A stretch of 64,000 nt of DNA from assembly GCA_003427395.1 (NCBI GenBank), contig BFEA01000011.1, forward strand, positions 4,179,532 through 4,243,531, in the 5' to 3' direction. The notes below the pieces were generated by a model. That model did no database searches and was not told where the DNA came from. It saw only the letters and a program-made list of their open reading frames with translations. The DNA comes from Chara braunii. Lineage: Eukaryota; Plantae; Charophyceae. Both the position numbers and the translations under genes were made by a program. Below, piece after piece: positions 16-130 of this stretch (the first letter of the stretch is position 1; each line of letters starts with the position of its first letter).

Positions 16-130
16 AACAGACCCACCAGTGCTAGCGATGCTGTTAAGCGTAGACATTGGTAGCACCTGGGGAGAGGCTCCATCTATTGGTGGGGAGCAT
101 CACCTGCTGGAAAACGGGTCCAGCGTCCCA
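16..130 (-). ncRNA. Retrocopy of unidentified ~115-nt structured RNA (family X)
   Basis: GGGACGCTGGACCCGTTTTCCAGCAGGTGATGCTCCCCACCAATAGATGGAGCC, then a hairpin, TGTTT and poly(A). Confidence 0.65.

Follow-up and report, generated by a model that had tools for sequence, protein, structure and literature searches.

A short repeat that recurs along a 64-kb stretch of the Chara braunii genome (hereafter, the window, of which 60,585 bases are non-N) represents, with a probability that we put at about 0.6, an abundant, short, non-coding, poly(A)-tailed, LINE-dependent SINE-like retroposon with a structured RNA. Judged against Rfam, this SINE-like family is most likely new, and it is most likely neither a cellular nor a telomerase-like RNA. 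We place it in the transposon world on account of its high density, its many coexisting lineages in which pairing is kept, the scattered 5′ ends of its copies, and the occurrence of its 5′ hairpin at the 3′ end of a LINE. None of the papers searched describes SINEs from Chara.

Window copies were gathered from a loose pattern of the conserved core, a list of A-rich tracts, and a covariance model of the unit's head (model R1, run with filters off), giving a total of nine copies and one fragment (Table 1). The 29-nt core occurs four times in the window at ≤3 mismatches, against none expected by chance from shuffles, and the looser core pattern yields 6 to 9 matches where 0.3 to 0.6 are expected. 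The original prediction had listed six copies, and, on reading each place, all six are genuine, although the limits of three needed redrawing: the listing at 17434-17489 covers just the head of c4, a unit of 127 nt that has a long hairpin and lacks an A-tail; that at 26158-26225 is a short form (c5) in which the head and 13 nt are followed by about 35 A; and that at 55333-55456 is 5′-truncated within the head and has an 11-nt target duplication on either side (c6). Three additional copies (c7, c8, and c9) belong to a sister type, here termed B, which differs from the A type in its 5′ hairpin and has the same GCTCC...GGAGCC core. In c7, for example, the 5′ hairpin is of a different sequence (CCGG/CCGG) and the GCTCC/GGAGC core is unchanged.

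Table 1. Copies of the repeat family in the window and the features attached to them (positions are those of the window)
Feature	Position	Strand	Description
Copy c1, A type	15-129	-	Full unit: head 76-129, long hairpin, TCTGTTT end
c1 A-tail	1-14		Reaches window edge
c1 leader	130-143		AT-rich, with TGTAT
Copy c2, A type	4157-4276	+	Full unit, hairpin class shared with c1; A-rich tail 4277-4308
Copy c3, A type	12296-12420	+	Full unit; divergent head in which three changes break the 5′ hairpin
c3 hairpin and tail			Near-perfect 18-bp hairpin of unrelated sequence; A-tail 12421-12449
Copy c4, A type	17361-17487	-	Full unit, GGGTTTT end, no A-tail; within a retroelement bounded by direct repeats
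Copy c5, A type	26158-26224	-	Short form (head + 13 nt); ~35 A at 26123-26157
c5 5′ extension, ~62 nt	26225-26286		Homologous to that of L009:32254-32310; U6 retrocopy inserted in it
Copy c6, A type	55334-55434	-	5′-truncated, begins at GGTG of head; A-tail 55321-55333
c6 target-site duplication, 11 nt	55437-55447 (5′ copy); 55306-55316 (3′ copy)	-	GCCCTCTTTGG
Copy c7, B type	35233-35308	-	Mini hairpin, CTGTTTAAG end; A-tail 35217-35232
Copy c8, B type	59246-59312	+	9-nt leader, TTGTT end; A-rich tail 59313-59341
c8 target duplication, 14 nt	59232-59245 and 59342-59355		
Copy c9, B-like	39932-39987	-	GTGTTT end; A-tail 39907-39931
Head fragment	36859-36885	+	5′ hairpin module only

The family extends well outside the window. 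A second genomic stretch, L009 (55.5 kb; BFEA01000059.1, assembly GCA_003427395.1), is the locus of the P0003 gene, which emerged from an exhaustive HMMER protein search with an RT fragment of the locus L007; L009 was thus chosen via its LINE protein and not via the repeat. Over 48 kb of L009, the covariance model of the head finds 14 copies with E < 1e-6 and, beyond these, weaker ones, so that the window and L009 together contain 23 confident copies in ~109 kb. Units are non-coding and range from about 58 to 190 nt in length, and at least seven distinct lineages are present among ~25 copies. A scan of metagenome contigs for exact matches to 20 nt of the core returned seven loci, two of which (L003 and L007, both BFBZ01 records of assembly GCA_003427375.1) contain three further full copies; this assembly and that of Chara braunii probably stem from the same project, as suggested by their adjacent accessions. 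In L003 (272-545), two family copies meet at their tails across one common 22-nt A/T run, and since this run is single, the 3′ end of the minus-strand copy adjoins a T-run rather than an A-tail. The five other loci (L001, L002, L004, L005, and L006) are unrelated metagenome contigs in which the core CTCCCCACCAATAGATGGAG coincides exactly with antisense sequence from the cox3 end (peptide SIYWWG). We considered a mitochondrial origin for the repeat and treated this match as coincidence, because the flanks are unmatched and about one chance match is expected. No exact match to the core was found in the viral and bacterial collections.

In alignments, the A-type unit resolves into a 54-nt head (~91% identical among copies), a 3′ domain of 0 to ~80 nt, a YTGTTT end that is sometimes lengthened by a few T, C, or G, and a poly(A) tail of 12 to ~35 nt. 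The head begins with GGGAC, continues into a hairpin that we term H1 (GCTGGA / CCCGNTT loop / TCCAGC), and ends with AGGTG-NN-GCTCC-C-CACC-AATAGAT-GGAGC-C, while the 3′ domain is nearly absent from the short forms (c5, c8, L009:39714, and L009:53861). The GGGACGC start that had been attributed to five copies is exact in three and departs by 1 to 2 bases in two, and the combination of a TGTTT-type end with poly(A), also predicted, is present in eight of the nine window copies.

Sequence ahead of the head is variable. The 16 nt upstream are AT-rich in all 10 copies tested (27% GC versus 47%; none of 5,000 random sets is as low), and TGTAT lies within 17 nt upstream of the head in 6 of 8 A-type copies (binomial p ~5e-9). 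The 57- to 62-nt 5′ extensions of c5 and L009:32201 have two blocks in common, TGCTGGCAGG and CAGACAT. Two possible sources of the leader were tried and rejected. As the trailer of an upstream unit, the leader resembles its copy's own trailer no better than shuffles do; as target-site sequence, it fits only c3 and L009:39714, given that in c8 and L009:32201 the leader lies within the insert.

Two of the helices in the unit vary in the manner of a selected RNA structure. Alignment of H1 from eight family copies, one LINE 3′ end, and two other tailed units shows 93.8% of cells paired, with changes on both sides in three of the six pairs (U-A to C-G, A-U to G-C, and G-C to A-U), which gives the predicted GCTGGA/TCCAGC hairpin the support of covariation. 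Its covariation score exceeds that of all 500 shuffles, and partners slid by 1 to 3 columns pair in only 13 to 58% of cells. The long 3′ hairpin folds in each full copy (z = -1.4 to -4.8) even though its stems fall into at least five classes that cannot be aligned with one another; within the commonest class (9 copies), RNAalifold recovers 19 consensus pairs, 10 of which have compensatory changes. The apex of this hairpin is conserved across stem classes as roughly GCTCTTAYCA, including in c6, whose hairpin otherwise forms a class of its own, and TATCA is found in the apex of three of five independent classes (p ~9e-4, for a motif picked post hoc). The claim that this downstream hairpin retains its pairing while its sequence changes completely therefore holds for the stems only, since the apical loop is conserved from class to class. 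Both patterns of substitution show that selection maintains the pairing of H1 and of the long hairpin.

The helices of the core are another matter. GCTCC/GGAGC, which closes a 12-nt loop, is nearly invariant, with one compensatory variant (c9, where it reads GCCCC/GGGGC) and several single breaks of the kind expected of decaying copies. GGTG/CACC is invariant in all A-type copies and is retained in only one of the three B-type copies. A putative H-type pseudoknot in which GGTG/CACC crosses GCTCC/GGAGC is sterically possible and geometrically plausible, and the invariance of GGTG/CACC speaks neither for nor against it.

The A-tails, target duplications, and 5′ truncations show that the copies were inserted through RNA, and the target-site duplications and 5′ truncations are those of LINE-type retroposition. 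Together with the covarying hairpins, these features bear out the earlier view of the family as retrocopies of a structured small RNA. Clear target duplications are recognizable in only 4 of ~20 copies: c6 is cut inside the head and flanked by its 11-nt duplication (c9 is truncated as well); c8 has a 14-nt duplication (p ~0 versus shuffles) that is separated from the head by 9 extra nt; in L009:39714, a 13-nt duplication ends ~3 nt before the head; and L009:32201 has a perfect 13-nt duplication (p ~0) situated 57 nt upstream of the head. As delimited by their duplications, inserts thus start 57, 9, or ~3 nt ahead of the head, or 26 nt into it, which does not support the original prediction that 5′ ends are fixed as in U6 retrocopies. 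Because the family starts are scattered and the neighbouring U6 retrocopy begins no more than 2 nt from the genuine 5′ end of U6, we attribute the extra 5′ sequence to the family RNA and not to the machinery that copies it.

Some insertions are composite. In L009, partial heads consisting of H1 only occur 23 to 40 nt ahead of full copies and, from their sequence, look like stacked or template-switched insertions. Clusters of such H1-only partial heads upstream of full copies are present at L009 42040-42320 (-) and 48500-48940 (+); one partial head is followed by its own inverted repeat, and one copy has an insertion of ~50 nt between H1 and the core. Template switching, or repeated insertion at a single target, may account for these clusters.

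The link to LINEs comes from L009, which contains an ORF with RVT_1 (the P0003 exon, 10001-11944, with homology to the ORF of L007 up to 12578) followed by a UTR of ~1.1 kb that terminates in an A-rich tail. Model R1 finds H1 at L009:13644-13672 (20.9 bits, E ~1e-3), 27 nt ahead of this tail. The LINE version reads GGGAC-ACCGGG-CCCGTTT-CCCGGT, with the flank and loop as in the family and three compensated stem pairs. The likeness amounts to one hairpin of 22 to 24 nt in one LINE copy (BLAST E = 0.004): the remainder of the 3′ UTR shows no significant likeness to the family, and the LINE has H1 only, without the GCTCC/GGAGC core or the long hairpin. Two other units, at L009:24979 and L009:26515, end in H1, ~10 nt, and poly(A), and an antisense tRNA-like stretch precedes one of them. 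In the interval 26470-26600 of L009 (minus strand), which takes in position 26515, the poly(A) tail follows an H1-like hairpin (CCGGA / CCCGTTT / TCCGG) at the end of the unit; the body of this unit resembles an antisense tRNA, a sense tRNA-like stretch follows the A-tail of the copy at L009:40524, and, by its sequence, the unit may be another SINE family. All-against-all comparison of the 400 to 800 nt upstream of ~25 copies finds nothing common beyond ~60 nt, so no copy runs on into a LINE body.

The family matches no known RNA family, as originally held. At the gathering threshold, the Rfam matches in the whole window are limited to U2, U6, and a weak tRNA, all of them located elsewhere than in the repeat, and five scans of single copies at E ≤ 10 (c1, c4, c7, c8, and a 190-nt long form) return only chance-level matches, with no tRNA, 5S, 7SL, snRNA, Y, vault, ribozyme, or telomerase RNA in the family copies. 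ARAGORN likewise detects no tRNA in the family, and there are no canonical A/B boxes, in agreement with the expected lack of tRNA features. SINEs with heads of unknown origin exist, and the missing tRNA, 7SL, or 5S head therefore weakens the SINE assignment without excluding that class. A likeness of the core to the U6atac/U6 stem-loop was considered and set aside, as it has no backing from Rfam and the AGC triad is absent.

Among described elements, the closest parallels are the poly(A)-tailed, LINE-1-dependent SINEs, such as Alu and B1 of mammals and the poly(A) SINEs of plants. Like these, the Chara family is short, non-coding, dispersed, A-tailed, and high in copy number, and it has target-site duplications, 5′-truncated copies, coexisting subfamilies, and composite or dimer-like copies. 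It differs from them in that its head derives from neither 7SL, tRNA, nor 5S (by Rfam and ARAGORN) and lacks recognizable A/B boxes, its 5′ end is non-uniform, and its body consists of a hairpin that covaries in the stem and is conserved in the loop. Stringent LINE/SINE pairs, such as UnaL2 and UnaSINE1 of eel, have a common 3′ stem-loop. The Chara system is similar in having a hairpin with a conserved loop and covarying stem that is common to a LINE 3′ end and a non-autonomous element, and this sharing suggests recognition by the LINE machinery. Such recognition is putative, and the arrangement is not the same: the Chara hairpin lies near the A-tail in the LINE but at the 5′ side of the unit in the family, and both the LINE and the family end in poly(A) instead of short tandem repeats.

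Within Chara itself, the U6 and U2 retropseudogenes share the family's insertion hallmarks and neighbourhoods, to the point of mutual nesting. A U6 retrocopy (26273-26509, plus strand), flanked by a 14-nt duplication (ATGCTGGCAGGTCC, at 26273-26286 and 26496-26509), sits in the 5′ extension of c5, and a U2 retrocopy truncated at both its 5′ and 3′ ends is in turn nested inside it; another U2 retrocopy is located at 4767-4868, overlapping a segment (4803-4901) that was masked in later searches. The parent of these pseudogenes is known, and they begin exactly at the snRNA 5′ end but are cut short at the 3′ end; for the family, by contrast, no parent is known, the 5′ extensions vary, and the 3′ end is constant.

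Beyond the family, A-rich tracts of ≥12 nt number 42 in the window, roughly one every 1.5 kb, and they mostly come after unrelated sequence, which suggests retroposition of many different RNAs; several A-tails are preceded by ...CCACGCGG(G) (e.g., at 20770 and 32592). The region containing c4 (13228-18891) is bounded by direct repeats of ~680 bp that are 85% identical (13228-13898 and 18198-18891) around minus-strand RT-like ORFs, which have an FMDDV motif near 14117 and no match in Pfam; the whole probably represents a decayed element, either of LTR type or Penelope-like. An integrase-core fragment is present at 12616-13023. A frame of 672 open codons (44374-46392, minus strand), with neither a Pfam match nor low-complexity bias, probably belongs to a host gene as one large exon.

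Three alternatives to the SINE-like reading deserve weighing. The copies could be processed retropseudogenes of a lineage-specific family of cellular small RNAs (a Pol III or snRNA-type RNP RNA with several gene variants), copied in trans by a LINE and dead on arrival. U6 and U2 are massively retrocopied in this same genome, the unit has no ORF, its U-rich 3′ end is like the remnant of a Pol III terminator, and its strongly conserved head and covarying hairpins behave as those of functional RNAs do; a cellular RNP RNA, too, would be consistent with strong selection on structure in many lineages. We nevertheless regard this alternative as unlikely. It sits poorly with the lack of an Rfam match, with seven or more lineages among some 25 copies, and with a density equal to or above that of U6; moreover, the 5′ ends are not fixed as they are in the U6 copy, the family retains its 3′ end where the U6 and U2 copies lose theirs, H1 recurs at the tails of a LINE and other retroposons, and partial heads are stacked ahead of full copies. 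The prediction had proposed such a multigene cellular RNA with an external USE+TATA promoter, which finds no support in c4, the only tail-less copy in the window: within 70 nt upstream it has no TATA or USE, and, embedded as it is in a retroelement bounded by direct repeats, c4 was rejected as a source gene; the ~120 kb of genome surveyed yielded no source locus. Descent from a cellular small RNA driven by an external promoter may be the case, but with a lower probability than the SINE-like reading. The suggested telomerase-RNA-like fold has no support. The family resembles telomerase RNA and other RNAs with H-type pseudoknots only in its two short helices able to cross (GGTG/CACC with GCTCC/GGAGC), but it measures just ~120 nt, has no Rfam similarity and no template-like segment (no complement of the telomere repeat was seen in the unit), and its crossing helix has no covariation support.

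The repeat could also be the orphan tail of one or more autonomous LINEs, that is, a 3′-terminal recognition module whose short copies are extreme 5′ truncations. This is improbable, even though 5′ truncation predicts just such a scatter of duplication-defined ends (+57, +9, +3, and -26 relative to the head start) and H1 does occur at one LINE 3′ end; the upstream sequences of ~25 copies have nothing in common past ~60 nt, and the single LINE examined carries H1 but neither the core helix nor the long hairpin. Very unlikely indeed is a self-cleaving ribozyme retroelement (HDV-like or hammerhead) in which GGGAC marks a cleavage-defined 5′ end. The conserved block does start sharply at GGGAC after a variable leader, and nested or crossing helices are possible; however, no Rfam ribozyme family is recovered even at E ≤ 10, no 3′ partner that could form a P1 helix with GGGACGC is visible by eye, and retrocopies keep uncleaved leaders, from which it follows that their source RNAs were not cleaved at GGGAC. 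Both the HDV-like and hammerhead layouts were accordingly rejected for want of a P1 partner and an Rfam match.

Under the SINE-like reading, the family RNA would be ~60 to 190 nt long and would consist, in order, of a variable AT-rich 5′ extension, H1, the GCTCC/GGAGC hairpin (possibly pseudoknotted through GGTG/CACC), a long hairpin that is optional and in which the stems would drift by compensatory change under a constant top loop, and a YUGUUU end. Its small size, U-rich end, and starts in variable upstream sequence suggest that Pol III probably transcribes it, with a promoter that would be internal or depend on the flank, and many source lineages may be active in parallel; the variable 5′ extensions are an indirect hint that copies may themselves act as sources. 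A LINE would supply the reverse transcriptase and endonuclease for the family, whose conserved structures could serve as handles for the LINE machinery, or for a common RNA-binding protein, in choosing RNA for target-primed reverse transcription. More speculatively, the three-part fold as a whole (H1, the possible pseudoknot, and the conserved-loop hairpin with its freely covarying stems) might be a specific protein-binding handle, either one that parasitises structure-specific, “stringent” recognition by a plant-lineage LINE of L1-like, poly(A) type or one belonging to an expressed Chara RNP RNA whose H1 the LINEs mimic; we consider this idea doubtful but worth stating.

At ~200 copies per Mb in two unrelated stretches, the family would, if this density applied throughout the ~2-Gb genome (a rough extrapolation), rank among the most abundant repeats of Chara braunii, and it should be masked prior to searches for non-coding RNAs in this genome. 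Its head falls outside the scheme of tRNA, 7SL, and 5S by which such elements are classified. The covariation of its hairpins, together with a hairpin common to a LINE tail, offers a testable handle on how retrotransposon machinery selects the RNAs that it copies in a streptophyte alga; in the Chara genome, this machinery also copies U6 and U2 at exceptional rates.
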